Shown: positions 24,636 to 62,133, counted from the stretch's first letter. The stretch is 64,000 nt of DNA from Macrostomum lignano (GCA_002269645.1 NIVC01000126.1:124001-188000), one strand, 5' to 3'. A program made the numbers and translations. Notes: generated by a model from the sequence alone, not told the origin.

Positions 24636-27600
24636 ATGGCTACATTTCCGCAGTCTCCGCCTCTGACAACGGAGACCAGCATTATAGAGGAAGAAGGTGA
24701 CGTTTTTGAAATCACGGATTTCACCAGCGCATCAGACTGGGAGCAGTTCATGTCCGAGTTAGAAGAGGTATTCAACGAATGGAAAGTGGATGGCGGCGGT
24801 CGGTTCTCCGTGAAGTCCGGTGGCACGGGCTTAGAATCGGTGCCTGAGGCTGAGAGAATGGCCGACTCGCGTCACGCCACGGCCGCCGCAGGCAGCAACG
24901 CCACTAGACGATTCGGCACCGATAGGCACTTGGATCGGCAGCAGCACACTTGGAAAGATCAGTCTTGTAGTGTACGGTACATGGACTGCGAGTTTAGATT
25001 GACGCATCATTGTCAAGTAGGTGATTTAGTTAAGTTCCAATTCCATCCAGTAAAGTTTAAATCGCATTCAGTTGAGTTCAAATCCCATCCAGTAAAGTTC
25101 AAACACGCAGTTAAGTTCAAATCCTATTAAGTGTTCAACTTCCACCCACTTCTGTTAAAATCCCATTCAGTTAGGTTCAAATCCCGTCCAGTTGAGTTCA
25201 AATCCCATCCAGTTGTGTTTAAATCCCATCCAGTTGAATTCAAATCCCATCCAATTAAGTTCAAATCCCATCCAGTCCAGTTAAGTTCAAATCCCATTTA
25301 GTTGAGTTCAAATCCCATCTAGTTAAGTTCAAATCCCATCCAGTTGAGTTCAAATCATATTTATTTGAGTTAAATCCCATCCAGTAAAGTTCAAATCCAG
25401 TCCATAAAAATTAAAATCCCATCCAGTATAGTTCAAATCCCATCCAGTATAGTTCAAATCCCATCCAGTATAGTTCAAATCCCATCCAGTATAGTTCAAA
25501 TCTCACCCAGTATAGTTCAAATCCCATACAGTCCAGTTAAGTTCAAATCCCATTTAGTTGAGTTCAAATCCCATCCAGTTGAGTTCAACTCCCATTTATT
25601 TGAGTTCAAATCCCATTCAGTAAAGTTCAAATCCCGTCCATAAAAATTAAAATCCCATCCAGTATAGTTCAAATCCCATCCAGTATAGTTCAAATCTCAC
25701 CCAGTATAGTTCAAATCCCATCCAGTCCAGTTAAGTTCAAATCCCATTTAGTTGAGTTCAAATCCCATCCAGTTGAGTTCAAATCCCATCCAGTTGAGTT
25801 CAACTCCCATTTATTTGAGTTCAAATCCCATCCAGTTGAGTTCAACTCCCATTTATTTGAGTTCAAATCCCATCCAGTAAAGTTCAAATCCCGTCCATAA
25901 AAATTAAAATCCCATCCAGTATAGTTCAAATCCCATCCAGTTGAGTTCAAATCCCATCCAGTATAGTTCAAATCCCATCCAGTTGAGTCCATATTTTAAA
26001 TGTTCCAATTCAAAGACAGCTTATACTTGAAATCCCGACTAAACAGGTTCAGCCTCCAAAGCCTAGCGAAGAAGATCAACCCGATCTAGCTGGGACAGAT
26101 GAAGCTGGGAAAGCAGCTGAGCAGCCTCCGGCCAGCGACAGCAAGACCTTTTGGCCGCCAGTGCTGCATCAGATTGCCTCATCCGATAACGATTTCCCCA
26201 GCGTTGCTCATTGTTTAACACGCTGGTTCGGCCTACGCGAGCTGATTGTAGTGAAGCCGAGCCAAGACCAGACAGTGTGCAATGAGAGTCGATTGCGACT
26301 GTTGCTAAGCAGCCTGTGTATCACTGCGCACAATTCCGGCTGCCACCTGCCGATCTTTCTGCAGGTTGGCCGGCCCGATCGGAGGCTGTACTTTGGCCAG
26401 GTAAGCATTTTTACTTGTAGGTCCTAGGCTCGAATCTTGCGTTCTATTATATGCTGTGTTCAGTAGAAATATTTAAATTTAAATCATACTGCTATTTGTA
26501 TCATCTGAAATTCAATAGAGATTTCCTAGATCCTTAGTTATTAGGCCGCCCTCCAGACCTCCAGTTAATAGGAAGCCCTCTCAGATCCTTAGTAGCTGGG
26601 CCAGCCTCCCAGATCCTCAGTTGCTGGGCCAGCCTATTAAAGTGTCAGTTTCTAGGCCAGCCTTCTAGATCCTCAGTTGCTGGGCCAGCCTCCTAAAGTG
26701 TCAGTTTCTAGGCCAGCCTCCCAAATCCTCAGTTGCTGGGCAACCCTTCCAGATCCTCAGTTGCTGGGCCAGCCTCCTAAAGTGTCAGTTTCTGGGCCAG
26801 TCTCCCAGATCCTCAGTTGCTGGGCCAGCCTCCTAAAGTGTCAGTTTCTGGGCCAGCCTCCTAAAGTGTCAGTTTCTAGGCCAGCATCCCAGATCCTCAG
26901 TTGCTGGGCCAGCCTCCTAAAGTGTCAGTTTCTGGGCCAGCCTCCCAGATCCTCAGTTGCTGGGCTAGCCTCTTAAAGTGTCAGTTTCTAGGCCAGCCTT
27001 CTAGATCCTCAGTTGCTGGGCCAACCTCCCAGATCCTCAGTTGCTGGGCCAGCCTCCCAGATCCTCAGTTGCTGGGCCAGCCTCCCAGATCCTCAGTTGC
27101 TGGGCCAGCCTCCCAGATCCTCAGTTGCTGGGCCAGCCTTGCAAAGTGTCAGTTGTTGGGCCATCCTCATAAAGTGTCGAGTTGGGCCAGCCTCCCAGCT
27201 TCATCCTCAGTTGCTAGCTAGATCTCAGGTTTTCAGCCTCCAACTCTATTACAGATCATACACTGCTTGATACTGAAAGCGCATCCATTATCTGCATCTG
27301 CACAATAGCGCATTAGCATAACTAATTACTCCAGCCAATTTGAAATCCTCGCCGCAGGCCCTCGGCTCCGGGCTCCGCACCCGATTCGAAATAGCCCAGC
27401 TGTGCAAAATCCCCAGGCACTACAGGCACCTGCAAGGCGCTATCGATATGTTTAGACAGCGAATGGCCTGTCCCGCAGTGCAGTCCGGCAGCCAATTCTC
27501 GTCCTCTAACGGGCCATCAATTAGCGCAGCTATTCGACTGAGCTACAGCCTAAGCCAGTTCTCCGACCGCCTGTTAGCCTGTCTGAGTCCCCTGCCCGAC

Positions 27601-30600
27601 ACGCTTCGTCATCGGCGCAATCAGCAGCAACGCGAATTGGACCTGCCAGCTCGGCTTCCTATTGGTCCGTGCGAGGAGCCAATCAGCGAATTGCAATTAG
27701 CCGCCGTTTGGCCTCGCCTAGCCGAAGAGATGGTAGTGGATACGGAGTCCTACACTGATTTGGATCCGTTGCACGCGCCAGTTTGGACTTTGAGGGCGAG
27801 ATTTCTTGACGACGCGCTGTGCAGATTGACCGACTGTTTAGGCCGCCTGCTGAGACTGTGCTCTCGACGAGAGACTGTTCACGACCTGCTAGCTGCGCTC
27901 TTTACTTCGTCGCCGACTGCCGCTGGTGTTGGCGGCACCTCTACCGGGTCTGGTGGCGCTGCCGACGGCGGCGGCGGCGGCGGCAAAAGCAGCGATGGAG
28001 CCGCGTTGGAGTCGGCTACTGCTTCTAGGTAGGTTTGTGATTGTCTTGATAGTTCTGCGCGATGGTTTGTGTTGTCTTGATAGTTCTGCGCGATGGTTTG
28101 TGTTGTCTTGATAGTTCTGCGCGATGGTTTGTGTTGTCTTGATAGTTCTGCGCGATGGTTTGTGTTGTCTTGATAGTTCTGCGCGATGGTCTTGGATTAT
28201 GGGCAATCATCCTTTCAGATCCTCAGTTGCTGGACCAGTCTCCCTGCTACATCCTCAGTTACTGGGCCAGCCTCCCAGCTCCATCCTCAGTTGCTGGGCC
28301 AGCCTCCACAACTCCATGCTCAGTTGCTGGGCCAGCCTCCACAGCTCCATGCTCAGTTGCTGGGCCAGCCTCCACAGCTCCATGCTCAGTTGCTGGGCCA
28401 GCCTCCACAGCTCCATGCTCAGTTGCTCGATCAGTCTCTCAGCTCCATTCTCAGTTGCTCGATCAGTCTCTCAGCTCTATCCTCAGTTGCTCGATCAGTC
28501 TCTCAGCTCCATCCTCAGTTGCTCGATCAGTCTCTCAGCTCCATCCTCAGTTGCTCGATCAGTCTCTCAGCTCCATTCTCAGTTGCTCGATCAGTCTCTC
28601 AGCTCCATCCTCAGTTGCTCGATCAGTCTCTCAGCTCCATCCTCAGTTGCTCGATCAGTCTCTCAGCTCCATCCTCAGTTGCTCGATCAGTCTCTCAGCT
28701 CCATCCTCAGTTGCTCGATCAGTCTCTCAGCTCCATCTTCAGTTGATCGATCAGCCTCTCAGCTCCATCTTCAGTTGCTCGATAAGTCTCTCAGCTCCAT
28801 CCTCAGTTGCTCGATCAGTCTCTCAGCTCCATCCTCAGTTGCTCGATCAGTCTCTCAGCTCCATCCTCAGTTGCTCGATCAGTCTCTCAGCTCCATTCTC
28901 AGTTGCTCGATCAGTCTCTCAGCTCCATCCTCAGTTGCTCGATCAGTCTCTCAGCTCCATCCTCAGTTGCTCGATCAGTCTCTCAGCTCCATCCTCAGTT
29001 GCTCGATCAGTCTCTCAGCTCCATCCTCAGTTGCTCGATCAGTCTCTCAGCTCCATCTTCAGTTGATCGATCAGCCTCTCAGCTCCATCTTCAGTTGCTC
29101 GATAAGTCTCTCAGCTCCATCCTCAGTTGCTCGATCAGTCTCTCAGCTCCATCCTCAGTTGCTCGATCAGTCTCTCAGCTCCATCCTCATTTGCTGAACC
29201 AGCCTCTCAGATCTACCCTCAGTTGCTCGATCAGTTTCTCAGCTCCATCCTCAGTTGCTGGGCAAACCTGTTATTTCCGTTCTCAGTTGCTGAACCAGCC
29301 TGTCAGCTCCATCCTCATTTGCTGAACCAGCCTCTCAGATCCACCCTCAGTTGCTCGATCAGTTTCTCAGCTCCATCCTCAGTTGCTGGGCAAACCTGTT
29401 ATTTCCGTTCTCAGTTGCTGAACCAGCCTGTCAGCTCCATCCTCATTTGCTGAACCAGCCTCTCAGATCCACCCTCAGTTGCTCGATCAGTTTCTCAGCT
29501 CCATCCTCAGTTGCTGGGCAAACCTGTTATTTCCGTTCTCAGTTGCTGTGCCAGCCTCTCAGCTCTATCCCTAGTTGCTTGACCACATCTTGCTACCCTA
29601 TTTCCATATTATAAATCTCTGTATACAAGATACAAATGTACCATTAAAAATTGCCATACAAAACTTCCACTCTGCAGAGCTCTGGACCGTCTGACTGGCA
29701 GCCGAGTGCCCAGCATGACCGACGCTGCCACCGGTGTGGTTCGCCGGGCCACTTCCAAGCTGTCTGTCCGAAGCGACCAATCGGCTCCGTTGAGCGAAGC
29801 CCAGCTGAACAGCTTGCTGCACTTTTTGTTCCCCGATGCGGCAGGAGTGTCGAGTAGGTTTGTTTTGGAGTTTATGATGGAGAACGTTATGTGCGAGATT
29901 TTCAACATTCAAGCTGGTAGCCAATGTCCACTAGAACATCAGGGATGTGGTAGCCAATGACCACTAAAGCATCAGGGATGTGGTAGCCAATGACCACTAA
30001 AGCATCAGGGGATGTGGTAGCCGATGTCCACTAAGGCATCCGGGATGTGGTAACCAGTGTTCACTAAAGCATCAGGGATGTGGTAGCCAATGACTACTAA
30101 AGCATCAGGGATGTGGTAGCCAATGACCACTAAAGCATCAGGGATGTGGTAGCCAATGACCACTAAAGCATCAGGGGATGTGGTAGCCGATGTCCACTAA
30201 GGCATCCGGGATTTGGTAGCCAGTGTTCACTAAAGCATCCGGTATGTGATAGACTATGAAACGTGCTTCCCCCCCCCCTCAGATGCGACTCAGCAGCAGC
30301 CTCAGCAGTACTCCGAGCGAGCTCAGAAGTTGGCTCGCGATCTGAAATGCGCCCCACTGGGCTCCCTTGCCCACCGTCTGGCCCTGGCCGTGGCCACACT
30401 GAATCACACTCACTCCAGCGGTATTCACGCTGTTGCTCACCTGTGGCAAGAGGTGGTGCTGGAATTGCGCTATCGCTGGGAGAACTCCTGTCCGTTGCCA
30501 GCGGCTGCCACGGCGTCGCCTTCTGCCGAGACGGAAGACAGCCAGTGTCAAGAGAACATTGTTGAGACGCCGCCAGACTTGGGCACCTCGCTGTTGCACC

Positions 30601-33600
30601 AAAAATTGCAGATGTTGCAATTGTGTATCGGGCGAAAACTGGCTAGGTTTGTTACTTATAGTAGGCATTGAATGGTTTTTTTAAAATGTAAAAGAAGTAC
30701 ATTCAAAGTTGTCATTAATGTTTAGCATGCTCGGGTGCCATTGTTTAAGTATCTACTTGCCATCTTCGAGTAACTACTCCTGCCATCTTCGAGTATCTAC
30801 TCTCGCCATCTTCGAGTATCTACTCTCGCCATCTTCGAGTATCTACTCTTGCCATCTTCGAGTATCTACTCTTGCCATCTACTCTTGCTATCTTCGATTA
30901 TCTACTCTTGCCATCTACTCTTGCCATCTTCGAGTATCTACTCTTGCCATCTTCGAGTATCCACTCTTGCCATCTACTCTTGCTATCTTCGATTATCTAC
31001 TCTTGCGCCATCTTCGAGTATCTACTCTTGCCATCTTCGAGTATCTACTCTTGTCATCTTCGAGTATCTACTCTTGCCATCTTCGAGTATCTACTCTTGT
31101 CATTTTCGAGTATCCACTCTTGCCATCTTCGAGTATCCACTCTTGCCATCTACTCTTGCTATCTTCGATTATCTACTCTTGCGCCATCTTCGAGTATCTA
31201 CTCTTGCCATCTTCGAGTATCTACTCTTGCCATCTTCGAGTATCTACTCTTGCCATCTTCGAGTATCCACTCTTGCCATCTACTCTTGCTATCTTCGATT
31301 ATCTACTCTTGCGCCATCTTCGAGTATCTACTCTTGCGCCATCTTCGATTATCTACTCTTGCGCCATCTTCGAGTATCTACTCTTGCCATCTTCGAGTAT
31401 CTACTCTTGCCATCTTCGAGTATCTACTCTTGCCATCTTCGAGTATCCACTCTTGCCATCTACTCTTGCTATCTTCGATTATCTACTCTTGCGCCATCTT
31501 CGAGTATCTACTCTTGCCATCTTCGAGTATCTACTCTTGTCATCTTCGAGTATCTACTCCTGCCATCTTCGAGTATCTACTCCTGCCATCTTCGAGTATC
31601 TACTCTTGTGCCATCTTCGAGTATCTACTCTTGTGCCATCTTCGAGTATCTACTCTTGTGCCATCTTCGAGTATCTACTCTTGCCATATCTTCGAGTATC
31701 TACTCCTGCCATCTTCGAGTATCTACTCCTGCCATCTTCGAGTATCTACTCTTGCCATCTTCGAGTATCTACTCCTGCCATCTTCGAGTATCTACTCTTG
31801 CCATCTTCGAGTATCTACTCCTGCCATCTTCGAGTATCTACTCCTGCCATCTTCGAGTATCTACTCAAGTATGCACTAAGGCATGCCTATGCCTATTTGG
31901 TACCGCTAAGAGTCGATCTGCGTATTTCTAGGGAGAAAACCTCCTCCATGGCAACTGTACAGCAACGCGAAGAGTCGGAGTCCGTCACAGCTTCGAGTGA
32001 ACAACAAGCCAACAATGACGTCAACATGGAAGGTGACGTCAGCGTTGACGGAGAGGATGAAGAGGACGAATTCTTCGAATGCGAAGAGGAGCCGCTGCAG
32101 CCCGATCATCAGCCAGACGGTCGGCTTCGACAATTCGTCGTCGCCTCGACATCTTCGTCGGCTTCGGCTGCTGAACCTGCTCGACTGTTGAAACGGCCCG
32201 ACCGAGTGCTGTGGGTTCCGGCTACGCAACAGGCGCCGCCAATGACTGAGGACAGTCTGGAGGAGCACACCGAATTGCTGGCTAAATTGGGCACCGATTC
32301 TCAGGCCGCCGCGCTGCGGGCTCGAATGCAGAGCAGCTCACTGCTCAGCGATATGCAGGCCTTTAAGGTTGGTCTGGGGTTCGATCCCGCGCTGGGAATC
32401 GCTGTTTGATCCCCACACTGGGAATCGCTGTTTGATCCCCACACTGGGAATCGCTGTTTGATCCCTTATTGGGAATCGCTGTTTGATCCCCACACTGGGA
32501 ATCGCTGTTTGATCCCCACACTGGGAATCGCTGTTTGATCCCCACACTGGGAATCGCTGTTTGATCCCCACACTGGGAATCGCTGTTTGATCCCTTATTG
32601 GGAATCGCTGTTTGATCCCCACACTGGGAATCGCTGTTTGATCCCCACACTGGGAATCGCTGTTTGATCCCCACACTGGGAATCGCTGTTTGATCCCCAC
32701 ACTGGGAATCGCTGTTTGATCCCTTATTTGGAATCGCTGTTTGATTCCCACACTGGGAATCGCTGTTTGATCCCCATTGGGAATCGCTATTTACCAACCC
32801 CAATAATCTTAATCAGACCCCGATAATCTTCTCCAACCAACAGTTCGATTTAACCTCCCCTATCAACCTCCGAAAATTTCCCCTACCAATCCCCGATAAT
32901 CTCCCCTACCAACCCCCGATAATCTCCCCTATCAACCTCCGAAAATCTCCCCTATCAACGTCCGAAAATCTCCCCTACCAATCCCCGATAATCTCCCCTA
33001 TTAACCCCCGATAATCTCCCCTACCAATCCCCGATAATCTCCCCTACCAATCCCCGATAATCTCCCACCCACCCTCTCGCCCAGGCTGCCAACCCGGGCT
33101 GCTGCCTGGAAGACTTTGTACGCTGGCATTCGCCCCGAGATTTCTCCAACGGCCAATTGTCAGCAAGAATGCAACTGCCGGGCAATATCTGGCTAGAAAC
33201 CTGGCAGCTTGCCAAGCCCATACCGGCTAGACTGCAACGCCGTCTGTTTGACGATACTAAAGAAGTAGAAAAGATACTCCAACAATTAAGCGGCTTAACG
33301 CCGGCCGAGGTTGCTAAGCTGTTGCTACCCAATGCTGTGCTGGACGGTCTGGCTAGCTTAGTGGATCTGCCAGCCGAAGAGGCAGCTATGCTGTCAGAAT
33401 CAGCGCCCAAGTTTCTGCGCACTCTGGAGGCCGCTTGCGAGAAAGCCTGCGACGCTACGAGAGAGCGGACGGCTAATCCTGATCGATACGAAAGCTTAGT
33501 TAATGATATTGCTTACCTGGAATTGCAGGTAATTTGTTATGATATTGTGAGTCTGAGTATGAGATAAGTTGTAGCCATCTAATTTGATTGGTTTGTTATT

Positions 33601-34775
33601 CATTCAGTCAGTCAGCCAGTCAGCCAGTCAGTCAGCCAGTCAGTCAGTCAGTCAGTCAGCCAGTCAGTCAGTCAGTCAGCCAGTCAGTCAGTCAGTCAGT
33701 CAGCCAGTCAGTCAGTCAGTCAGCCAGTCGGCCAGTCAGCCAGTCAGTCAGCCAGTCAGCCAGTCAGTCAGCCAGTCAGTCAGTCAGTCAGCCAGTCAGT
33801 CAGTCAGTCAGTCAGCCAGCCAGCCAGTCAGTCAGTCAGCCAGTCAGTCAGTCAGCCAGTCAGTCAGTCAGCCAGTCAGTCAGTCAGTCAGTCAGTCAGT
33901 CAGCCAGTCAGTCAGTCAGTCAGTCAGTCAGTCAGTCAGTTAGTTAGTCAGTTAGTACTTTACCACAGAGTTAGTTAACCAGTTAGTTTTTTAGTTTGTT
34001 AGTTCGTCAGTTAGCTAGCTAGTTAATCAGTTAGTTAGTAAGTTAGTCAGTTAGTTAGTAAGTTAGTCAGTTAGTTAGTCAGTTAGTTAGTTAGTTAGTT
34101 ACCGTGCTCCATCCCATCATAACAGCGAACCAGAGGGCGAGTGTAAAGAAATGTGTAAAAATAGCATACGGTAATTATTTATCATAACTATTAATAGCGC
34201 TAAGTGGGCATTGCACATTTATATAGCATTTATATTTTTAGAGATTCAACCTGCCAAAATAAAAAAATTCCCTGTGTTTTGTTTTGTCACCTTGTACCGT
34301 ATTTGCACATCTCATACTGCTTCAGGTGGTTCGACTGCGCTCCCTACTTTTCAAGTTCAACTCCTGCTGTACCGGCGTTGCCAAGGACTCATCTTACTCG
34401 ACTGACCCAGTTATTAGGCAATTCCTTCTAGATCTGCTCAGGCAACCGGAGGTGCCGGTTGTTGGCGCATCTCGAGGCCCTATTGGCAGCGCTTTGCAAC
34501 GAATGTTTGTTGAAAGTCACGCTGCCTCGGCCGCTGCCGCTGCTGCCGCCGCTGCCGCCAATTCTGCAACATCTGCAACATTGGCGGAATCATCTTCTGC
34601 TACTAATAGCGGAGGCAACTTCCCGCCATTCACAGCCAAGGAGATGCTGCTACGATGCGTGGCGCCTCGACCCGGGCCGGGTTCGCGACCGACACCTCAG
34701 CGATTGTACTGCGTATTGGCCAGGGATGACTATCGATTTGCTGGGGCTTTTACTGAGGATACAACGTTTTTGTAG
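24636..34775 (+). CDS. RAB3GAP1: Rab3 GTPase-activating protein catalytic subunit, 8 exons
   Basis: Exons 24636-25016, 26047-26400, 27358-28028, 29678-29853, 30283-30646, 31932-32367, 33085-33528 and 34326-34775, all GT-AG and phase-consistent. Motifs include VFEITDFTSASDWEQF, NDFPSVAHCLTRWFGLRE, HLWQEVVLELRYRWEN, LLSDMQAFKAANPGCCLEDFVRWHSPRD and QRLYCVL..DDYRFAGAF. Confidence 0.95.
25040..25990 (+). repeat. 21-bp minisatellite in RAB3GAP1 intron 1
   Basis: (AAATCCCATCCAGTTGAGTTC)n with variants. Confidence 0.9.
26570..27210 (+). repeat. 28-bp minisatellite in RAB3GAP1 intron 2
   Basis: CCTCAGTTGCTGGGCCAGCCTCCCAGAT alternates with GTGTCAGTTTCTGGGCCAGCCTCCTAAA. Confidence 0.9.
28034..28190 (+). 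repeat. 31-bp minisatellite at the start of RAB3GAP1 intron 3
   Basis: About five copies of GTTCTGCGCGATGGTTTGTGTTGTCTTGATA (28052, 28083, 28114, 28145, 28176). Confidence 0.9.
28215..29570 (+). repeat. 33/32-bp minisatellite in RAB3GAP1 intron 3
   Basis: 33-bp CTCAGTTGCTGGGCCAGCC units grade into 32-bp CTCAGTTGCTCGATCAGTCTCTCAGCTCCATC units. Confidence 0.9.
29915..30240 (+). repeat. 33-bp minisatellite in RAB3GAP1 intron 4
   Basis: (CATCAGGGATGTGGTAGCCAATGACCACTAAAG)n. Confidence 0.9.
30755..31866 (+). repeat. 23-bp minisatellite in RAB3GAP1 intron 5
   Basis: (GCCATCTTCGAGTATCTACTCTT)n with higher-order blocks. Confidence 0.9.
32392..32790 (+). repeat. 26-bp minisatellite in RAB3GAP1 intron 6 (5' part)
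   Basis: (GGGAATCGCTGTTTGATCCCCACACT)n. Confidence 0.9.
32795..33070 (+). repeat. 23-bp C-rich minisatellite in RAB3GAP1 intron 6 (3' part)
   Basis: (AATCTCCCCTACCAATCCCCGAT)n. Confidence 0.85.
33602..34100 (+). repeat. (CAGT)n / (TAGT)n microsatellite in RAB3GAP1 intron 7
   Basis: Tetranucleotide array visible directly. Confidence 0.95.
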
Positions 34776-34784
34776 TTGCGGCCT

Positions 34785-35180
34785 GTTGGCATAGCAACCG
34801 TTAGTTACTATGCACTCGATTGAATACTAGTTGCTTTGCAGTCTATGACTATGCGCGATTTAATTTGTCACCATAGCAACCGCAGCTTTAGTTGCTATGC
34901 AGCTATTTGCTATTATTACCATAGCAACCGCAGCTTTGGTTGCTTTGCAGTCTATGACTTTATGCGCGATTCAATTTATCGCCATAGCAACCGCAGATTT
35001 AGTTGCTATGCAGTTGTGCGTTATTATCATCATAGCAACAGCAGATTTAGTTGCTATGCAGTTGTGCGTTATTATTATCATAGCAACCGCAGCTTTAGTT
35101 GCTACGCAGTTATTTGCTACTATCACCATAGCAACCACAGCTTTAGTTGCATATTTGTTTTATTGCCATAGCAACGGCAT
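34785..35180 (+). repeat. 48-bp tandem repeat with an internal 9-bp inverted repeat, just after the RAB3GAP1 stop
   Basis: CATAGCAAC at 34790, 34872, 34920, 34983, 35031, 35079, 35127 and 35167. Most are followed after ~10 nt by GTTGCTATG or a variant. Confidence 0.85.
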
Positions 35181-35892
35181 AGTAAGTTTTATATGATACT
35201 TTTTGAGTCATAGTTTATGGTAAATAGGTTTAAAATTCTGTAGGAATTGAAATTTTCGCCTTAAATCATAGGAGTAGTTTTAATTTGAGACGCTTAGACT
35301 GCATTGTTATTTTTCGCTTTTAGTTATCGCTGTTGGTTATAGTAGGTTTTTGGTACATTTTAATCTGAATGTCTTTTAAAAAATCTTTCCTACACTAATT
35401 TTCGAGTCTTGGAATAATTGTTTTTGTTAGTTAAATTATCTGCTTAAATTCTTATTCATAATGTACTGCAATGTACATATGAATTTCATGTCTCTTCATA
35501 CTACTAGCTAACTACTCTTCTTCCTGGTTGTGTCGTTTACATGTCCAATTATACTACTGTAAGGCACAATGACATTTGCGCCATTTTTGTGATATCAACA
35601 TGTAGTTGTCGTGTTAAATAAGATTTATTTATAATTCGTTTGAAAATATTGATTTCTTGTTAATCTGCTAAGTAAATAAAGACAGTGTCCAGTATTTGTG
35701 TTCTTGATTGTGTGTGTAACTTATTTGATTTCAATTTATTTTGCTTTTATTACTGTTTTAAAATTTAATAATAGTTTTGATGTAATAAAATTTCATAGTA
35801 GATAGGTGTAAAGTATTTACAGTTATGCTTTATGAATATATGCTTTTTCATTGATAATTTGCATGATTTTATTCAAACAAGAGTGATTTAGT

Positions 35893-36894
<1,002 letters not shown>

Positions 36895-40458: not shown

Positions 40459-40596
40459 TTGAAATTCCAACTGAAGAATTGAAAGATATTTCCAAGAAAG
40501 GTTGACTGTCTGTTTTCGTAACTGTGGTCACAAATTCTGCTTTAAAAGCAAAATCTTAGATGTATTGTTCCTTTACAAGCTAATGCACTGATTCTG

Positions 40597-42496: not shown

Positions 42497-42508
42497 ATAA
42501 CTCTTTGC

Positions 42509-47155: not shown

Positions 47156-47280
47156 AAAATCAAGCTTGTAAAGTTTTATAAAACTCTTCTTAATTAAATC
47201 TGTACATTAAATTCAGTGATTATTAAAAACCATCGCCACCCGACCAATTCCAGTCAACCAAAACTCTTTAAAAAGCAAAT

Positions 47281-48240: not shown

Positions 48241-48343
48241 TCAATAAAAAAGATCATAGCACTAAACCTTGTTTTTTTTCTCCTTGTTTAATCTTGCTTA
48301 TTTAAATTTAAATTTATTTACACATATTTCTGTGTACACAGCA

Positions 48344-50162: not shown

Positions 50163-51424
50163 ATGCCTCTGTTTGGAAAGGAACCCGATCTAACAGAAAC
50201 ATTGTTTAATCTTCGCATGACTAATAAACAGTTGTCTCGACTGGCTGCCAAAGCTGAGAAGGAGCAGGCTAAAGAACAGGTGAGAATTTTTATTTTCTTC
50301 ACTTGACCAGCATATATTTTTTCATTTTTGCCGCTATTAACGAAGGATACCATTAAACGCTAATTATTGTACTTACTTGCGGTGCAAATATTGACAGTAG
50401 TATATGCTATTAACCAAAAATTGTGAAATAATTCCCTATTTTAAACAGGCCAAAGTTAAGAAAGCGTTACAGCAGCGCAACGTCGAAGGCGCTCGAATCT
50501 ATGCCGAGAATGCCATCAGAAAGAAGAACGAATCGCTTAATTATCTCCGGTTTGCTGCCCGCATTGACGCTGTAGCTGCTAGAGTGCAAACTGCCCAAAC
50601 TATGAAGGGCGTTACTAAAAATATTGGACAGGTACGATTGATGTTTATACATTTCTATCTTCATAAGAGTAAAGGAAAATATATTAAACAAACGAATTAT
50701 CTTTATTTTAACAGAATACTGTTAAATGTATTTAACAGTATTTAACAGTTAATTATACTGTTAAAAAAGCCGATATGTATCGAAAAATGCTTTGTAGGGC
50801 AATTTTTAATTGAAATTATATTATATAACTTATGTTTAATCTAACAGTAGTTTATCTGTATCTGTGCCCGAAATGTAGCGTAAATTATTTTGTAGGGAAC
50901 AATTATATAATCTTACTGTAGCTTCTATTCCATCTTCTACACTTAGTTTGTGTTTTAAGTTGCCACGTAAGATGGCCGATATGTAGGGTAAATAACTTAA
51001 GTAAGCGAATTTTATATCAAATTAGTATTTTGATTACCAGTATGTAGCATAATTTAAGACCATAGCAACCGTTGCTGTTCCTTTAATCTAGGTAACCAAA
51101 GACCTAGAGCGAGCCATGTCCAGCATGAACCTGGAGGAGGTCGAAAAGGTGATGGGCAAATTCGAGAAAACATTCGAAGATTTAGACGTTCGCACGCAGA
51201 CTGTAGAATCGTCTATGGGCAATGCGATGACGCTAAGCGCCCCGGAGGATCAGGTGAGCTCCCTGATTCAACAGGTGGCCGACGAGAACGGGCTGGAGGT
51301 GGCCGACCAATTGGCCGGGCTCGAACCGGCCGCCGGAGCCACCCCGGGGGCCGCGTCAGCCCAGTCCGAGGAGCGGAAGCGCGAGGACGCGCTCAACAAG
51401 CGACTGGCTCAGTTGCGCCAGTGA
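50163..51424 (+). CDS. CHMP1A: ESCRT-III subunit CHMP1 (closest to CHMP1A), 3 exons
   Basis: Exons 50163-50279, 50449-50631 and 51092-51424, all phase 0. [51 protein letters not shown] and a MIM1-like [10 protein letters not shown]. Confidence 0.92.
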
Positions 51425-51634: not shown

Positions 51635-51666
51635 AGACAGACAGACAGACAGACAGACAGGCAGAC

Positions 51667-51714
<48 letters not shown>

Positions 51715-51925
51715 GCAGACAGACAGACAGACAGACAGGCAGACAGACAGACAGACAGACAGACAGGCAGACAGACAGACAGACAGACAGGTAGACAGGT
51801 AGACAGGTAGACAGACAGGTAGACAGACAGACAGACAGACAGGTAGACAGGTAGACAGGTAGACAGGTAGACAGACAGGTAGACAGACAGACAGACAGAC
51901 AGACAGACCGACAGACAGACAGACC

Positions 51926-51977
<52 letters not shown>

Positions 51978-52008
51978 CAAAGACAGACAGACAGACACAA
52001 AGACAGAC
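51635..52008 (+). repeat. (GACA)n microsatellite
   Basis: Direct reading. Confidence 0.95.
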
Positions 52009-52704: not shown

Positions 52705-54555
52705 GTGGGTGCCCCTGTCTTTTTGGTGGGCGCCCCTGTCTCCTATAGGTGGGCGCCCCTGTCTCCTATAGGTGGGCGCCCCTGTCTCCTAGGTGGGCGC
52801 CCCTGTCTCCTAGGTGGGCGCCCTGTCTCCTGGTGGGCGCCCCTGTCTCCTATAGGTGAGCGCCCCTGTCTCTTTGGTGGGTGCCCCTGTCTCCTTGGTG
52901 GGCGCCCCTGTCTCCTTGGTGGGCGCCCCTGTCTCCTAGGTGGGGCCCTCGTCTTCTTGGTGGGCGCCCCTGTCTCCTATAGGTGGACGCCCCTGTCTCC
53001 TAGATGGGCGCCCCTGTCTCCTGGTGGGCGCCCCTGTCTTCTATAGGTGAGCGCCCCTGTCTCTTTGGTGGGTGCCCCTGTCTCCTTGGTGGGCGCCCCT
53101 GTCTCCTAGGTGGGGCCCTCGTCTCCTTGGTGGGCGCCCCTGTCTCCTATAGGTGGGCGCCCCTGTCTCTTTGGTGGGTGCCCCTGTCTCCTAGGTGGGC
53201 GCCCCTGTCTCCTATAGGTGGGCGCCCCTGTCTTCTAGGTGGGCGCCCCTGTCTCCTAGGTGGGTGCCTTTGTCTCCTGGTGGGCGCCCCTGTCTCTTTG
53301 GTGGGTGCCCCTGTCTCCTTGGTGGGCGCCCCTGTCTCCTTGGTGGGCGCCCCTGTCTCCTTGGTGGGCGCCCCTGTCTCCTTGGTGGGCGCCCCTGTCT
53401 CCTGGTGAGCGCCCCTGTCTCTTTGTGGGCGCCCCTGTCTCCTATAGGTGGGCGCCCCTGTCTCCTATAGGTGGGCGCCCCTGTCTCCTAGGTGGGCGCC
53501 CCTGTCTCCTTGGTGGGCGCCCCTGTCTCCTAAAGGTGGGCGCCCCTGTCTCCTGGTGAGCGCCCCTGTCTCTTTGTGGGCGCCCCTGTCTCCTATAGGT
53601 GGGCGCCCCTGTCTCCTATAGGTGGGCGCCCCTGTCTCCTAGGTGGGTGCCCCTGTCTCCTTGGTGGGCGCCCCTGTCTCCTAGGTGGGGCCCTTGTCTC
53701 CTTGGTGGGCGCCCCTGTCTCCTATAGGTGGGCGCCCCTGTCTCCTAGGTGGGGCCCTCGTCTCCTTGGTGGGCGCCCCTGTCTCCTATAGGTGGGCGCC
53801 CCTGTCTCCTAGGTGGGGCCCTCGTCTCCTTGGTGGGCGCCCCTGTCTCCTATAGGTGGGCGCCCCTGTCTCCTAGGTGGGCGCCCCTGTCTCCTATAGG
53901 TGGGCGCCCCTGTCTCCTGGTGAGCGCCCCTGTCTCTTTGTGGGCGCCCCTGTCTCCTATAGGTGGGCGCCCCTGTCTCCTATAGTTGGGCGCCCCTGTC
54001 TCCTAGGTGGGCGCCCCTGTCTCCTTAGTGGGCGCCCCTGTCTCCTATAGGTGGGCGCCCCTGTCTCCTGGTGAGCGCCCCTGTCTCTTTGGTGGGTGCC
54101 CCTGTCTTCTTGGTGGGCGCCCCTGTCTCCTATAGGTGGGCGCCCCTGTCTCCTGGTGAGCGCCCCTGTCTCTTTGGTGGGTGCCCCTGTCTCCTTGGTG
54201 GGCGCCCCTGTCTCCTTGGTGGGTGCCCCTGTCTCCTTGGTGGGCGCCCCTGTCTCCTTGGTGGGCGCCCCTGTCTCCTTGGTGGGCGCCCCTGTCTCCT
54301 ATAGGTGGGCGCCCCTGTCTCCTGGTGAGCGCCCCTGTCTCCTTGGTGGGTGCCCCTGTCTCCTTGGTGGGTGCCCCTGTCTCCTTGGTGGGCGCCCCTG
54401 TCTCCTTGGTGGGCGCCCCTGTCTCCTATAGGTGGGCGCCCCTGTCTCCTGGTGAGCGCCCCTGTCTCTTTGGTGGGCGCCCCTGTCTCCTTGGTGGGCG
54501 CCCCTGTCTCCTGGTGAGCGCCCCTGTCTCTTTGGTGGGCGCCCCTGTCTCTGGT
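52705..54555 (+). repeat. GC-rich 21-23-bp minisatellite (GGTGGGCGCCCCTGTCTCCT[A/T]), ~1.85 kb
   Basis: Direct reading. Confidence 0.95.
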
Positions 54556-54968
54556 GGCCCATTCCGCTGACATGCTATCACAGGCTGTGCAGGGAGAAGA
54601 GAACGGAGAAAAGAAAAAAGAGACGAGAGAAGAGAGCTGAGAAGAGACACAAACCTTGAGCGGGCCGGATTGCTATTGTGAAGTTTCAAAGGACCCGAGG
54701 GCGGGATGGAGAGGCTTCGTGGGCCGAAATTGGCCGACCCCCAGATTAAAGGTTTAGATTAGGGTTTAAGATTCGGTTTAGTTTAGTTTTATGATATAGT
54801 TTAGACACAGGATAGGTTTTATTCAATAAGTTAGAGTTTAGGTTAAGCGTTAGTTTAGGCAGTCAAATTTTCGATAGTTAAGCTGCGCACTAACCGCGGC
54901 CAGCTCTGCTTAACTTGAAGCGCTAGACCAACTTGGCTGGCCTAATAAAGCAATCAACTCATTTATTG

Positions 54969-55441
54969 ATGAAAATGCCAGAAGAAGCTGCAGCTGAGAA
55001 AAGTTCATCTCAGGCAACAGCAGAGGCAGCAGAGTCTTCTATGACAGCTGTTGAGCAGTCAACCGCAGCAGCCGCAGCTCCGCCATCCGGCGGTCTCAGC
55101 GTCCTCCAATTAGAGATGAAATTCCAGCACCGGTTCACCGAGCAGGATCCGGACTTTCAGGCCTGTTGGAATCGCGAGAAATCGCCAACACCCCCGTGGT
55201 GACCCGCTGGTACCGGAATCCCCGGCGGCAGTACGACTGGACTAGCGAGGGTCGGCGGCATCAGCAGCGCCAGCGTTACCATGGCAACCACAGAGGCGAC
55301 AGTCGAGACGGCGATTATTATCAACGCAACGAACCGTCGAGAAATATTGCCGCCGGTGTTAAACGAGACAGTCGTCATTTCGATAGGAATAACGGAGACA
55401 ATTCCAGTGGATCCGCTAGCAAGTCCTATCGACGCTACTAA
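54969..55441 (+). CDS. RAMAC: RNMT-activating mini protein (RAM/FAM103A1)-like gene interrupted by a 1-nt frameshift at C5 (55191-55195)
   Basis: Frame A gives LEMKFQHRFTEQDPDFQACWNREKSPTPP. Frame B continues VVTRW followed by an R/N/G/Y-rich tail. Together they resemble human [33 protein letters not shown] plus its NR-rich tail. Confidence 0.75.
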
Positions 55442-55579: not shown

Positions 55580-56600
55580 AAAATGTGGCTCCCTACGATT
55601 TCTTAGCGCGTGTCCTCTTACAGATGTGGCTCCCTACGATTTTTAGCGCGTGTCCTCTTACAGATGTGGCTCCCTACGATTTTTAGCGCGTGTCCTCTTA
55701 CAGATGTGGCTCCCTACGATTTTTAGCGCGTGTCCTCTTACAGATGTGGCTCCCTACGATTTTTAGCGCGTGTCCTCTTACAGATGTGGCTCCCTACGAT
55801 TTCTTAGCGCGTGTCCTCTTACAGATGTGGCTCCCTACGATTTCTTAGCGCGTGTCCTCTTACAGATGTGGCTCCCTACGATTTTTAGCGCGTGTCCTCT
55901 TACAGATGTGGCTCCCTACGATTTTTAGCGCGTGTCCTCTTACAGATGTGGCTCCCTACGATTTTTAGCGCGTGTCCTCTTACAGATGTGGCTCCCTACG
56001 ATTTTTAGCGCGTGTCCTCTTACAGATGTGGCTCCCTACGATTTCTTAGCGCGTGTCCTCTTACAGATGTGACTCCCTACGATTTCTTAGCGCGTGTCCT
56101 CTTACAGATGTGGCTCCCTACGATTTCTTAGCGCGTGCCCTCTTACAGATGTGGCTCCCTACGATTTTTAGCGCGTGTCCTCTTACAGATGTGGCTCCCT
56201 ACGATTTTTAGCGCGTGTCCTCTTACAGATGTGGCTCCCTACGATTTCTTAGCGCGTGTCCTCTTACAGATGTGGCTCCCTACGATTTCTTAGCGCGTGT
56301 CGTCTTAAAGATGTGGCTCCCTACGATTTCTTAGAACATGTCCTCTTTCCGAAAATGTGGCTCTCTACGCTCTCTCTTAGAATATATTCTCTTCCACAGA
56401 TGTGCTTTTCTTCGATTTTTAGCACAAATAATCTTTTACAGATGTGGCTCCCTACAATTTCTTGAAACATGTCATCTTCCGAAAATTTGGCTCTCTACAG
56501 TCTCTTAAATGTACTCTCTTCCACAAATTTGACTCCCTTATAAGGATATACGATTTTTTCAGCACATATTCTATTTTACAGATGTAGCTCCTTACGATCT
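55580..56600 (+). repeat. 40/41-bp minisatellite (CAGATGTGGCTCCCTACGATTTTTAGCGCGTGTCCTCTTA)
   Basis: Homogeneous centre with degenerate edges. Confidence 0.95.
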
Positions 56601-57044: not shown

Positions 57045-57640
57045 TTCTCACTTTCAGATCTCTTCTCACCAAATCTCTCATCTCAGTCTCTGATCTATTC
57101 TCACCAAATCTCTTATCTTAGTTTCAGATCTCTTCTCATCAAATCTCTCATCTGAGTTTCAGATCTCTTCTCATCAAATCTCTCATCTGAGTTTCATTTC
57201 CTCTTATCAAATCTCTCATCTGAGTTTCAGATCTCTTCTCGCCAAGTCTCACGTCTCAGATCTCATCTCACCAAATCTCTCATCTCAATCTCAGATCTCA
57301 TCTCACCAAATCTCTCATCTCAATCTCAGATCTCTTCTCGCCAAGTCTCTCATCTCAGTTTCAGATCTCTTCTCACCAATTCTCACATCTCTCACTAAAT
57401 CTCTCATCTAAATCTCAGATCTCCTCTCACTAAATCTCTCGTCTCAGTTTCAGATGTCTTCTCGCCAAGTCTCACATCTCATTCTCAAATCTCTTCTCAC
57501 CAAATCTCACATTTGAGTTTCAGATGTCCTCTCACTAAATCTCTCATCTCAGTTTTAGATCTCTTTTCGCCAAGTCTCTCATATCAGTCTCAGCCTCAGA
57601 TCTCCTCTCACTAAATCACTCCCCAGTCTCGCATCTCGTC
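57045..57640 (+). repeat. Degenerate pyrimidine-rich ~30-bp minisatellite (TCTCAGATCTCTTCTCACCAAATCTCTCA)
   Basis: Direct reading. Confidence 0.85.
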
Positions 57641-57696
57641 TCAGCAATAATGTTTCTAATTAACCTAGATTATCTTAAAACTTGTCGGCTCGCTGC

Positions 57697-58512
57697 ATGG
57701 CCCCTGTACAGCCTCTGGTTCGCAATCGGAAACAGTTAGAATCGCTGCTGCAACAGGTGCCAACATTTGCTAATCCTCAATCGCGTTGGGAGCAATACGC
57801 CACGCCTGGCGAGGTGGCTGCCAGCTGGCTGTACGATGCCAAGATGCGCTGGAATTGCTTCACTGCCGAGCAGTCCGTATTGGATCTGGGCTGCGGTCCC
57901 GGCGCCCTCATGACCGGCTGTCTGGCTTTGGGCTCCGGTTACGTGTGCGGAGTCGATATTGACAGCGACTCGCTTGATCTCTGCCGCTCCAACTTGATGG
58001 AGCTGTTTTCACCTGGCAATGATGATGATGATAATGACGTATCAGCGAACTGGGATCTGCTGCAGGCGGATGTGACTCGCCTGTCGGCTGGACTGGTTCA
58101 TCAAAGACAGTTCGATGTGGTTGTGACCAATCCACCGTTTGGCACTTACAGCGACGCGAAACTCAGTCACAAAAGCAATAGTAATAGGAGGAACAGGAAA
58201 GCAGGACAATCAACATCATCGAAAGGAATTGATATTGCTTTTTTAGAAGCCGGTATTGCCGCTTCTTGTGGGTTAGTGTTCTCGTTGCACAAAACTGCCA
58301 CAATGCCATTTGTGATGCATCGCGCGAGGCAGGCCTGCGCTCGGAAGCTGATGAGCAGCGATGACGTTGCTAGCGCTATGGTGGAAGGTCGCGACTATAG
58401 CGTCAGTCAGGTTGCTAATCTGCGATATAATCTAAACAGATCGTACAACCATCATCTTAAGGAGTCCAAAGATATTGAGGTCAGCATCTTGGAGGTTGCC
58501 TTCCTCAGATGA
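57697..58512 (+). CDS. METTL5: rRNA N6-adenosine methyltransferase METTL5, intronless
   Basis: KQLESLLQQV..F..P....EQYATP.EVAA, VLDLGCGPG, GVDID, VVTNPPF, SLHK and LRYNL.RSYNHH.K.SKDIEV. Confidence 0.92.
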   Translation: MAPVQPLVRNRKQLESLLQQVPTFANPQSRWEQYATPGEVAASWLYDAKMRWNCFTAEQSVLDLGCGPGALMTGCLALGSGYVCGVDIDSDSLDLCRSNLMELFSPGNDDDDNDVSANWDLLQADVTRLSAGLVHQRQFDVVVTNPPFGTYSDAKLSHKSNSNRRNRKAGQSTSSKGIDIAFLEAGIAASCGLVFSLHKTATMPFVMHRARQACARKLMSSDDVASAMVEGRDYSVSQVANLRYNLNRSYNHHLKESKDIEVSILEVAFLR

Positions 58513-58957: not shown

Positions 58958-59385
58958 GCTCAGCCAATAAAAGAGCAGTAAAGAGAAAGGTCGGATGTTA
59001 CACGGACGAAACTCAAGCAGGCCCAATCTAGCTCACCCAATGAGAGAGCAGTTAGGAGAGAGGTCAAAGTTAGAAGGACGAAACTCAGTCCAGAGGGGCA
59101 GGCCCAATCTAGCTCAGCCAATGAGAGAGCAGTTAGGAGAGAGGTCAAAGTTAGAAGGACGAAACTCAGTCCAGGAGGGCAGGCCCAATCTAGCTCAGCC
59201 AATGAGAGAGCAGTGAGGAGAGAGGTCAAAGTTAGAAGGACGAAACTCAGTCCAGGAGGGCAGGCCCAATCTAGCTCAGCCAATGAGAGAGCAGTTAGGA
59301 GAGAGGTCAAAGTTAGAAGGACGAAACTCAGTCCAGAGGGGCAGGCCCAATCTAGCTCAGCCAATGAAAGAGCAGTAAGGAGAGC
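58958..59385 (+). repeat. 81-bp tandem repeat (family shared with 45537-45860)
   Basis: GGCAGGCCCAATCTAGCTCAGCCAATGAGAGAGCAG..GGAGAGAGGTCAAAGTTAGAAGGACGAAACTCAG; period 81 (59100, 59181). Confidence 0.9.
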
Positions 59386-59817
59386 GGTCTGGAGTAGTCG
59401 GATGATTTTATTTCATAATTGATGGCGATGATGCTACATGTACTTAGGTACTGCTTGGGAAGCAAGGAGACAAGCTGAATATTCTCTGTTGCACTGAATG
59501 AATTGTGGCTGTGTGCGAAATCAAATATTGACTTTATGGCCTAACAGATCATAAAAAGACTTTAGTACGTTAATGATGCAGAACTTCCATGTCTATGGTA
59601 CACTTTCGTTAGAATTGTGCTCAGAAGCTGTGTATTAATGATTAAATAAGATAAAACTAGAATTAGAAACAGAGCTCATTGAAATTTAACATTCTTTTTT
59701 ATATTACGTGTATATGAAAACATATGGTTTGCGCCTATCAGCGTCCACTTTACAAATTTAATTGGTGTTGAATATGCTGATAAACAAATCATAGTTTTTC
59801 AACCGCGCCTCAATACA

Positions 59818-62133
59818 ATGAAAAGCATCGTTGGTTCCGCTTGTCTGCTTCATCATGTACGCGGCAACACGGGGAAGCGCCGTTTCGGATTCATCAGGTC
59901 AAAACAACGCCATCAGTTAACCCTGAATCGGCGCCAACTATTGCCTCATCTGTGCGACTCTGTGTCGCAGCAGCTGTGCTCAGGACATGTCGTCAATGCT
60001 GCTATGGTGGCATCAACAACGGCAGGTCAGTCGCTGTCGAGTCAGCTGACCTACCACAGTTTGCAGGAGTTCACCAGCAGCTGGGACGAGCGAGCACCTC
60101 TGTCGCCAGTCAGGCATTTCGGCTTCCCCGTTGCTGCCTGCCGAGTGGATCTGGCCAATCAGGAGAGTCGGATGTTGAGCTACTCAACTCAGCGAGTGTT
60201 TGTGGATGACAATCTAGCAGAGTTGGCTACATCATCGGATGAGCTAACGGAAAAGGACATTGTGTCCGCGATAAGCTACAGCGTCTGTTGCTACTGTAGA
60301 GCAGAAGCGACAATCCTGGCTGCTAAGCGGGCGGTGCCGATGGTTCTGTCGACGAAGAGCGCGGCCAAGACTGACCTGGATTCGCCCAGTCGAAGGCCTC
60401 AACTGTTGCTGCATCATCAAGCTCAAAAGCGCGCCTGTGGCAAGGCCAGCAGTAGGAAACCGGCCCGACTTCAGCAGCAGCGACCACTGCATCGGCGTCG
60501 GTTGAATCAGTCGGTGCAACAGCAGCAGCTGGAGGAGACAACAGCTACTGAGACTTGGGATTTGCGTGAGTCAGCTGGGGGAAGACCCTTCATTTGAATG
60601 GGCTATGATATGTACAATGGAAACTGCATGGCAAGCACTTAGGGGTGCCAAAGCTTCTGCAGTAAGGATCGGTACATGACATACATATCCAAGGATGTCG
60701 CAATCGATTTTATGGTGCGGGACGAAGCCGAGAATTTTACGAGCGCATTACACGACTAAATTTCTACATATTATTTTTGGGAATCGGTGGTGTTTGCCCT
60801 CATTTTGGCACCGCAGGCACTCGTTTTGGCGCCACTGGCACTCGATCATTTTAGCGCCGCAGGCACTGGATCATTTTGGCGCCACTGGCACTTTTTTCAA
60901 CGCCGCAGGCACTCGATCGTTTTGGCGCCACAGGCACTCGATCGTTTTGGCGTCACAGGCACTCGATCGTTTTGGCGTCACAGGCACTCGATCGTTTTGG
61001 CACCGCAGGCACTCGATCGTTTTGGCACCGCAGGCACTCGATCGTTTTGGCGTCACAGGCACTGGATCAGTTTGGCGCCACAGGCACTCGATCGTTTTGG
61101 CGCCGCAGGCACTCGATCATTTTAACGCCGCAGGCACTCGATCATTTTAGCGCCGCAGGTACTGGATCATTTTGGCGCCACTGGCACTTACATGTATTTC
61201 AACGCCGCAGGCACTAGATCAGTTTGGCGCCACAGGCACTGGATCATTTTGGCGCCACAGACACTCGATTTTAACGCCGCCGGCACTGGATCGTTTTGGC
61301 GCCCGCGGAAGCAAAATTATTGATTTCCATAACAGGCCTCAAGGTGGGGCGGGGGATCAAGCGCATGGCAATTGTCGTTTATGCCTGCCTAAGCCATAGG
61401 GTTTTTAATTTTAAGGTGCACCATCACTTGCTCCGCTCCTTATGGCTACGCCCCTAAAGGACAACTTGGTTCTATCGTTGGTAACTCATTACTCCCATAT
61501 CCGCCCCATCCCTAAGCAGCCTCATCAACAGACGCCTCCCTAGCCTGGCAGTTGCTGCTTGACCAACAGGCGAACTCGAACCAGCAAGCAGCAATCATTG
61601 ATCAGTCTCCGGATCTCTCCAACAGCACAATGGAAACTCAATCCAACTGCAAGGACACGGCAGCCTCAATGGACTCGGCATTTTTCACCTGCAGCGGAGT
61701 TGCCCCTCTGTCTCCTTTGACACTTGAGGATCAGCCAGGTGACGATTTGATTGAAATTCGACAAATCCAACAGAGCTGCCTGACTCAACTCGACCGGATT
61801 CGATCGATTCTAACAACCTCGGAGCTGGCCAACCTGACTGTTGCTAGGATTCGAACTTGCGACCAACTGCTAGGCCAAATTGACTCCAGCCTGCGACAGA
61901 GCCTGCCGGATATAAGCGAGGCCGATTGCGACACTTCAAATCCGTCCATGGCCACTCTGACTTGCGTCGATCTGGCGGCAGCCGACAATTTGAGCGCCGC
62001 CACAAGCAGAAAGCGGCAGCAGCAGCAGCAGCAGCAAAAACAGCAGCAGGGTCACCGGCGCCAGAGAAGCCACCTATTCAAGCTGATGGGCCTGACAAGA
62101 CGCCGAAGACTAGAGGTGGACTCGACCGACTGA
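59818..62133 (+). CDS. Putative two-exon gene of unknown function (59818-60565 + 61520-62133)
   Basis: Two long GC-rich ORFs. The donor GTGAGT at 60566 (phase 1) is phase-compatible with the acceptor CTAAGCAG ending at 61519. The intervening sequence holds a minisatellite, as other introns here do. Q-rich tracts; no family recognised. Confidence 0.45.
60800..61305 (+). repeat. 25-bp minisatellite (ACTCGATCGTTTTGGCGTCACAGGC)
   Basis: Direct reading. Confidence 0.9.

Follow-up and report, generated by a model that had tools for sequence, protein, structure and literature searches.

Ten consecutive same-strand genes of Macrostomum lignano: transcription units and spliced-leader imprints at gene starts

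Do ten consecutive genes on one strand of a flatworm genome form one exceptionally long operon, or a chain of smaller units? The window analysed here, a stretch of 64,000 nucleotides (nt) from Macrostomum lignano (GCA_002269645.1), lies on scaffold NIVC01000126.1, where, according to an exact-protein look-up, the record coordinate equals the window coordinate + 124000; the NIVC01 series is the Mlig_3_7 assembly (Wudarski et al. 2017, PMC5730564). Between positions 24636 and 62133 (~37.5 kb) the window carries ten real genes, head-to-tail and all on the plus strand: RAB3GAP1, TRAPPC3, an SPPL2-like signal peptide peptidase, ZDHHC6, a gene for a protein of 116 amino acids (aa), an EPSTI1-like gene (EPSTI1L), CHMP1, RAMAC, a METTL5-like methyltransferase and an orphan. 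In M. lignano, a single 35-nt spliced leader (SL), CGGTCTCTTACTGCGAAGACTCAATTTATTGCATG, which ends in ATG, is added at acceptors of the motif [T/C]TNCAG; trans-splicing affects 30% of the genes, and operons contain 15% (PMC8629364). With a probability of about 0.8, the ten genes form a chain of SL-trans-spliced units that includes at least one true multi-gene operon, rather than a proven single ten-gene operon. An initial annotation of this DNA had suggested an unusually long operon or a chain of operons in a flatworm with SL trans-splicing and polycistronic units; the biological premise holds for M. lignano (PMC8629364) and the word "chain" fits, while a single ten-gene operon is unsupported.

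The gene content of the array is well supported. The Pfam domains found are TRAPP, Peptidase_A22B together with PA, DHHC, Snf7, RAM and a methyltransferase domain, and the models of TRAPPC3, ZDHHC6, CHMP1, METTL5 and the orphan are exact matches to GenBank proteins. PAA90111 is RAB3GAP1, PAA90112 is TRAPPC3, PAA90114 is ZDHHC6 and PAA90119 is the orphan; since the accession range PAA90111-PAA90119 is filled by nine called proteins, no other annotated protein-coding gene is apparent inside the array. Minus-strand open reading frames (ORFs) of at least 90 aa contain no Pfam domain and are located in tandem repeats or opposite plus-strand exons, and neither an Rfam match nor a transfer RNA was found between the ten genes. 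Both the common orientation of the ten genes and the lack of a minus-strand gene among them, as initially described, are therefore borne out, whereas the label "COX7B-like" is not: the 116-aa protein shows only a sub-threshold Deltameth_res match and no significant PDB match. Adjacent genes are thus co-oriented throughout, without an opposite-strand gene between them, as the operon definition of PMC8629364 demands.

Transcription units and the extent of co-transcription

The grouping of the genes was carried over to the window from the locus tags of its paralogous copies, three of which are present in the assembly (NIVC01000814, NIVC01001614 and NIVC01004279). In tags of the form MligNNNNNN.gN, the same prefix denotes the same transcriptional-unit cluster (PMC5730564). 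SPPL2, ZDHHC6 and EPSTI1L are Mlig015429 g5, g6 and g8 on NIVC01001614; SPPL2 and EPSTI1L are Mlig029636 g2 and g5 on NIVC01000814, where CHMP1 (g6) is placed by its numbering; and RAMAC and METTL5 are Mlig024045 g1 and g2. A prefix common to non-homologous genes presupposes an RNA-seq transcript assembled across them, so units of four to five genes and of two genes are already annotated. The first unit comprises SPPL2, ZDHHC6 and EPSTI1L, with the 116-aa gene between them, and probably continues into CHMP1, and the second, annotated in the paralogous copies, comprises RAMAC and METTL5. RAB3GAP1 (Mlig018442), TRAPPC3 (Mlig032831) and the orphan (Mlig026529) have prefixes of their own; they are separate annotated units, each possibly, though not necessarily, co-transcribed with adjacent genes. 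We infer co-transcription from this grouping, and the positions of promoters are inferred too.

We propose that RNA polymerase II would transcribe through several genes in one pass, and that each downstream messenger RNA (mRNA) would be freed as the 3′ end of the preceding gene is formed and the 35-nt SL is joined to a (T/C)TNCAG acceptor. The minisatellites of the spacers would be fast-evolving filler that the system tolerates. The EPSTI1L-CHMP1 spacer measures 1249, 1186 or 3152 bp depending on the copy, and such copy-to-copy differences in length fit a tolerated turnover of repeats.

Operons of M. lignano are defined by a repeat-adjusted gap of <1 kb and reach a maximum of nine genes, a number attained by two operons; repeats inflate their spacers, and RNA-seq-derived transcriptional units tend to break within the repeat-rich ones (PMC8629364). 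Measured from stop codon to acceptor, and hence with the 3′ untranslated regions (UTRs) included, the spacers of the array are 710-3547 bp long. Subtraction of the repeats that are detectable within the window leaves 765, 1653, 1134, 1947, 710, 747, 1312, 717 and 872 bp, so that five of the nine spacers pass the published rule outright. The initial description of the intercistronic spacers as minisatellite-filled was accurate: they hold tandem arrays, a known property of this genome (PMC8629364).

The most inclusive alternative is one polycistronic unit of ~37.5 kb comprising all ten genes, driven by one promoter ahead of RAB3GAP1 and resolved wholly by SL trans-splicing. The uniform orientation with nothing between the genes agrees with it, as do the flanks: the 10 kb preceding RAB3GAP1 contain no annotated gene, and the orphan is followed by a convergent minus-strand ankyrin gene outside the window. 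The five spacers below 1 kb even with 3′ UTRs, the known breakage of RNA-seq units in repeat-rich spacers (PMC8629364) and the fusion of RAB3GAP1 with TRAPPC3 in older-assembly models can be added on the same side. The fused models (UniProt A0A1I8JC39 and A0A1I8GW07, 1267 and 1269 aa) splice across a 34775/35891 junction that joins the end of RAB3GAP1, immediately ahead of its stop, to TTTAG, 1 nt before the TRAPPC3 ATG; they are either read-through evidence or mere ab initio merging of neighbours. However, no fewer than five unit prefixes occur across the array in the public annotation, four spacers still measure 1.1-1.9 kb, no published operon of this genome has more than nine genes, the orphan is without trans-splice evidence and that for TRAPPC3 is ambiguous. 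A ten-gene operon is therefore unlikely; if true, it would have more genes than any operon reported for M. lignano, and minisatellites would dominate its kilobase spacers.

At the other extreme, the ten genes may be transcribed independently and co-oriented by chance, trans-splicing serving only to trim outrons and to donate AUGs. The chance of 2 x 0.5^10 that had been put forward for the shared orientation is right in its arithmetic but post hoc. From the 72,846 annotated genes of M. lignano (PMC5730564), we calculate that ~140 ten-gene same-strand runs are expected genome-wide by chance under independent orientation; independence is moreover the wrong null, because 15% of the genes are assigned to operons (PMC8629364). 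Besides these expected runs, independent transcription is favoured by the fact that most trans-spliced genes of the species lie outside operons, by spacers (0.7-3.5 kb) that could contain promoters, and by CCAAT-containing minisatellites in two of them. What it fails to accommodate is the sharing of unit prefixes by non-homologous neighbours in the paralogous copies, which requires spanning RNA-seq-assembled transcripts, and we consider ten independent genes a slim prospect.

The chain of trans-spliced units that we favour has its own weak points. Co-transcription is deduced from the locus-tag prefixes of paralogous copies, and four of the nine spacers, at 1.1-1.9 kb after repeat subtraction with the 3′ UTR included, exceed the 1-kb limit. 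About 60% of the trans-spliced genes of M. lignano are outside operons (PMC8629364); trans-splicing by itself is consequently no proof of an operon. Canonical poly(A) signals have no clear placement after several of the genes, chance occurrences of AATAAA and ATTAAA being too numerous in the AT-rich sequence to position 3′ ends. SL-like matches of 3-4 nt at SPPL2, RAMAC and EPSTI1L are indistinguishable from single-nucleotide polymorphisms beside an ATG, with 17 background matches, and no evidence of trans-splicing was found for the orphan, the last gene of the run.

Spliced-leader imprints at gene 5′ ends

Evidence for trans-splicing was found within the assembly itself. The window was compared with all paralogous copies, and a match of at least 6 nt to the 3′ suffix of the SL was taken as an imprint if it replaced a different sequence. 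Exactly four sites were obtained, 42512, 47254, 50133 and 57700, each at the 5′ end of a gene, which places the junctions at 42511/42512 (ZDHHC6), 47253/47254 (116-aa gene), 50132/50133 (CHMP1) and 57699/57700 (METTL5). At all four acceptors the SL 3′ end (..TTGCATG) replaces the native ..CAG in some of the copies. With a slash for the junction, ZDHHC6 reads TTTGCATG/GAC in the window, TTTTTCTG/GAC in the paralogs and TLFQ/DSSC in the older-assembly protein model; CHMP1 reads TTGCATG/CTC in the window, TTTCATG or ATTCATG in the paralogs and ILFQ/LSANS in the older-assembly model. METTL5 reads gcTGCATG/GCC in the window and gcTTCCAG/GCC on NIVC01000814, and the 116-aa gene reads aaTTCCAG/TCAACC in the window and aaTGCATG/TCAACC in three paralogs, neither gene having an older-assembly model. 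The UniProt models in question, the fused RAB3GAP1-TRAPPC3 ones included, are presumably derived from the earlier ML2 assembly, and they have Q (CAG or CAA) where Mlig_3_7 gives M or L. The native CAG is thus retained by the METTL5 paralog, by the window's own 116-aa gene and by the older models of ZDHHC6 and CHMP1.

Accordingly, these four acceptors, all on the plus strand, are of two kinds in the window. Those of ZDHHC6 (42505-42511; TTGCATG, native TTTTCAG), CHMP1 (50126-50132; TTGCATG, native ..TTCCAG) and METTL5 (57694-57699; TGCATG, TTCCAG in the paralog) are overwritten by the SL, and that of the 116-aa gene (47248-47253; TTCCAG) is intact and fits the published [T/C]TNCAG (PMC8629364). 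The ATGs of ZDHHC6, METTL5 and CHMP1 are preceded by (T)TGC and so match the terminal 6-7 nt of the SL, and the GenBank coding sequences (CDSs) of ZDHHC6 and METTL5 are 5′-partial, starting exactly at 42512 and 57700, one codon past the "ATG". Only 2-5 bases are replaced, always within the 5 nt that precede the junction, and the extent varies among the copies.

Mlig_3_7 was polished with Pilon using STAR-mapped RNA-seq. Reads that start in the SL would have been laid over the acceptor during polishing, and up to five bases would have been "corrected" to the SL. Since the SL suffix overwrote the native CAG at 42509, 50130 and 57697, the "ATGs" there are not genomic and the AUG is provided by the SL. 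To judge from the comparison of copies, the ATGs at 42509 (ZDHHC6), 50130 (CHMP1) and 57697 (METTL5) are artefacts of RNA-seq polishing, and these apparent start codons double as base-resolution imprints of trans-splicing. By the same token, of the nine genes that follow RAB3GAP1, at least four (ZDHHC6, the 116-aa gene, CHMP1 and METTL5) are evidently SL trans-spliced. No mention of SL-derived false ATGs in Mlig_3_7 was found in the literature searched.

True genomic SL relics at the three starts, left by retroposition or cDNA-mediated gene conversion, are scarcely credible: METTL5 and SPPL2 are intronless here and one protein-coding gene is reported to carry a full genomic SL sequence at its 5′ end (PMC8629364), but merely 2-5 bases at most 5 nt before the junction are replaced, to an extent that differs among near-identical copies, CAG is read at these sites by the older-assembly models, ZDHHC6 and CHMP1 have introns, and the polishing method accounts for the pattern directly.

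Other traces of the leader were sought as well. Local alignment of the full 35-nt SL to the window gave best scores of 22-25, which shuffled sequence reaches as well; the window thus contains neither an SL RNA gene nor a long relic of the SL. TTGCATG is not enriched (16 found, 14.6 expected), and only its position is informative. Neither the exact-protein look-ups nor the cluster listings returned an SL-bearing cDNA, all entries being from GenBank, UniProt or MetaClust, and the supplementary tables of Grudniewska 2018 and 2016 yielded neither these genes by name nor a flag for trans-splicing.

Trans-splicing of TRAPPC3, SPPL2, EPSTI1L and RAMAC, for which the signals are suggestive only, we infer from weaker features. 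Imprints of 3-4 nt, in which the copies differ at position -4, occur at the probable RAMAC junction 54971/54972 (TTGATG in the window, TTCATG on NIVC01001614) and at the SPPL2 junction 38519/38520 (TTTTATG in the window, TTTCATG in the paralogs). The SPPL2 candidates span 38513-38547 (+) and include a second junction, CAGCAG/TTA at 38547/38548; the 5′-partial CDS annotated for the NIVC01004279 copy begins directly after the equivalent CAGCAG. Both putative SPPL2 acceptors are suggestive only. The TRAPPC3 candidates span 35859-35891 (+): TTGCATG at 35859-35865 is present in all three copies and may be an SL-overwritten acceptor, and the AG of the TTTAG ending at 35891 serves as acceptor in the older-assembly fused models; the former is as good a candidate as the latter.

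Five AG motifs had initially been proposed as acceptors, all at exact positions, and their fates differ. TTCCAG at 47253 is exactly right, the paralogs reading TGCATG at the same place. GATTTAG at 35891 is plausible, being used by the fused models, with TTGCATG at 35859-35865 as its rival, and ACACAG at 48341 is plausible too, but the annotated 5′ ends of EPSTI1L vary among the copies. The other two are wrong, since GCTCAG at 50137 lies 5 nt downstream of the real CHMP1 junction and AACCTAG at 57668 lies 31 nt upstream of that of METTL5. The closeness of an AG to an ATG does not discriminate, as an AG ends within 10 nt upstream of 50% of the 1009 plus-strand ATGs of the window and within 30 nt of 82%; the [TC]TNCAG motif occurs within 30 nt upstream of 10%. 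Part of the evidence initially offered depends, in addition, on the artefactual ATGs.

Initiator codons probably donated by the leader, and known operon systems

The terminal ATG of the SL has been noted for Macrostomum (PMC10468722). In the array, the SL AUG is in frame with the ORFs of ZDHHC6, CHMP1 (from 50133), RAMAC, METTL5 and, at the second candidate junction (38547/38548), SPPL2, and it opens a 6-codon upstream ORF at the 116-aa gene. ZDHHC6 (42512-44700, +; exons 42512-42840, 43296-43794 and 44239-44700; PAA90114; Pfam DHHC), a palmitoyltransferase, consists of 429 aa plus the SL-donated Met, and METTL5 (57700-58512, +; single exon; paralog Mlig024045g2) of 270 aa plus the SL-donated Met; neither has a native genomic start codon. 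In both, the acceptor abuts the ORF, the SL AUG is in frame and a usable genomic AUG is lacking; because the first internal Met is ~65 residues into ZDHHC6 and ~49 into METTL5, the full-length proteins would require the SL AUG. For these two genes and a long form of CHMP1, the acceptor would stand immediately ahead of codon 2 and the SL AUG would be the sole full-length start; the SL AUG of RAMAC would likewise be in frame. Flatworm SLs reportedly donate initiators in this way, the 3′-terminal AUG being said to serve as such in the work of Cheng, Cohen, Ndegwa and Davis (J Biol Chem, 2006), and ZDHHC6, METTL5 and long-form CHMP1, apparently devoid of a native start and in frame with the SL AUG, would conform to it.

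The array differs in no kind from the operons described in the same organism (Ustyantsev & Berezikov 2021, PMC8629364; Wudarski et al. 2017, PMC5730564), with which it shares the SL, the (T/C)TNCAG acceptors, co-oriented conserved genes of housekeeping type, spacers inflated by tandem repeats and a partial annotation as multi-gene units; it has ten genes against the published nine, and the distance criterion does not hold across all spacers as measured. Operons of Caenorhabditis elegans are similar in that SL trans-splicing tied to upstream 3′ end formation separates the mRNAs of a polycistronic precursor and the clustered genes are functionally unrelated. They differ in reserving a separate leader, SL2, for downstream genes and in having spacers of ~100 bp, whereas here a single SL carries the AUG and the raw spacers are 0.7-3.5 kb long and full of minisatellites. 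The polycistrons of Schistosoma and Echinococcus and the operons of Ciona and Oikopleura likewise use one SL type for monocistronic and operon genes. Intercistronic regions are short in these four genera, and repeat-filled kilobase spacers are a Macrostomum trait.

The operon candidate itself adds little, given that SL trans-splicing, repeat-filled spacers and operons with as many as nine genes have all been published for M. lignano. The practical value of the locus is a warning: polishing of Mlig_3_7 swapped real ..CAG acceptors for the SL ..GCATG, which creates false start codons, destroys acceptor motifs and could mislead gene models, motif statistics and the planning of transgenes or of CRISPR edits close to 5′ ends. 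The CAG motif is present at only 9,551 of 21,754 annotated trans-splice sites (PMC8629364), and the artefact could contribute to the CAG-less share. The imprints also mark trans-splice sites at base resolution within the assembly itself, and they suggest that ZDHHC6 and METTL5 rely on the SL for their initiator AUG.

Remaining genes, repeats and surroundings of the array

The first gene, RAB3GAP1 (24636-34775, +; 1091 aa; PAA90111, Mlig018442g1; Pfam Rab3-GTPase_cat), is multi-exonic, with a genomic ATG and introns rich in minisatellites; no evidence for its trans-splicing was found. TRAPPC3 (35893-36894, +; 178 aa; PAA90112, Mlig032831g1; Pfam TRAPP) has exons at 35893-35934, 36017-36114 and 36498-36894. 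The SPPL2-like gene (38596-40458, +; paralogs Mlig015429g5/g11 and Mlig029636g2) is a single exon of 620 aa from the first genomic ATG; a search with SPPL2 returned no other Macrostomum species. The 116-aa gene (47281-47631, +) is a single exon with an ATG of its own, and EPSTI1L (48336-48883, +; paralogs Mlig015429g8 and Mlig029636g5) has its ATG at 48344, its stop at 48883 and its candidate acceptor, the ACACAG, ending at 48341.

CHMP1 (50133-51424, +; Pfam Snf7) has exons at 50166-50279, 50449-50631 and 51092-51424 according to the 209-aa GenBank paralog model, and its protein is identical to PAA65824/PAA76552 (Mlig029636g6). The gene is intact, yet it is without a GenBank gene on NIVC01000126.1. 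RAMAC (54966-55441, +; ATG at 54975; Pfam RAM; paralog Mlig024045g1) shows a 1-nt deletion at ~55191 relative to the NIVC01000814 and NIVC01001614 copies, a frameshift that leaves 75 aa annotated versus 155 aa; this is either a residual assembly indel or the mark of a pseudogenised copy. The orphan (59818-62133, +; 453 aa; PAA90119, Mlig026529g1) has exons at 59818-60565 and 61520-62133.

The window and its NIVC01000814 copy are ~90-97% identical across long blocks, and their divergence is mosaic: identity is 98-100% around the 5′ end of RAB3GAP1 (2 kb upstream included) and from the 116-aa gene to CHMP1, and lower, 92-96%, around TRAPPC3 and SPPL2. The mosaic suggests gene conversion or a mixed ancestry of the copies. 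As a promoter detector, conservation between these two copies was uninformative, the mosaic of identity (92-100%) extending over coding and non-coding sequence alike.

The largest spacer minisatellite (52705-54551) has a 21-bp unit in ~87 copies. The other spacer tandem arrays are at 34828-35150, 40594-40926, 41922-42484, 45549-45861, 46833-47130, 48962-49460, 51635-52008, 55583-56347, 57046-57593 and 59017-59389. Two of them, 45549-45861 and 59017-59389, belong to one 81-84-bp minisatellite family with the CCAAT-box-like GCCAATGAG in the same orientation; they sit upstream of the 116-aa gene and of the orphan, respectively, and could be a dispersed repeat or a promoter-like element.

Upstream of the array, long plus-strand ORFs were noted at 18023-20479, 6074-8356 and 9230-10777, none of them annotated as a GenBank gene within the range checked. 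One is a GC-rich (61%) reverse-transcriptase ORF (Pfam RVT_1), and the two others have no significant Pfam family. One of the latter encodes 760 aa in a stretch of 29% GC, and a look-up of its protein, made in search of an upstream neighbour, found it not on record. Downstream of the orphan, a tandem array of a 32-bp unit (62973-64000; 32 copies with 96% matches) continues past the window's last position.

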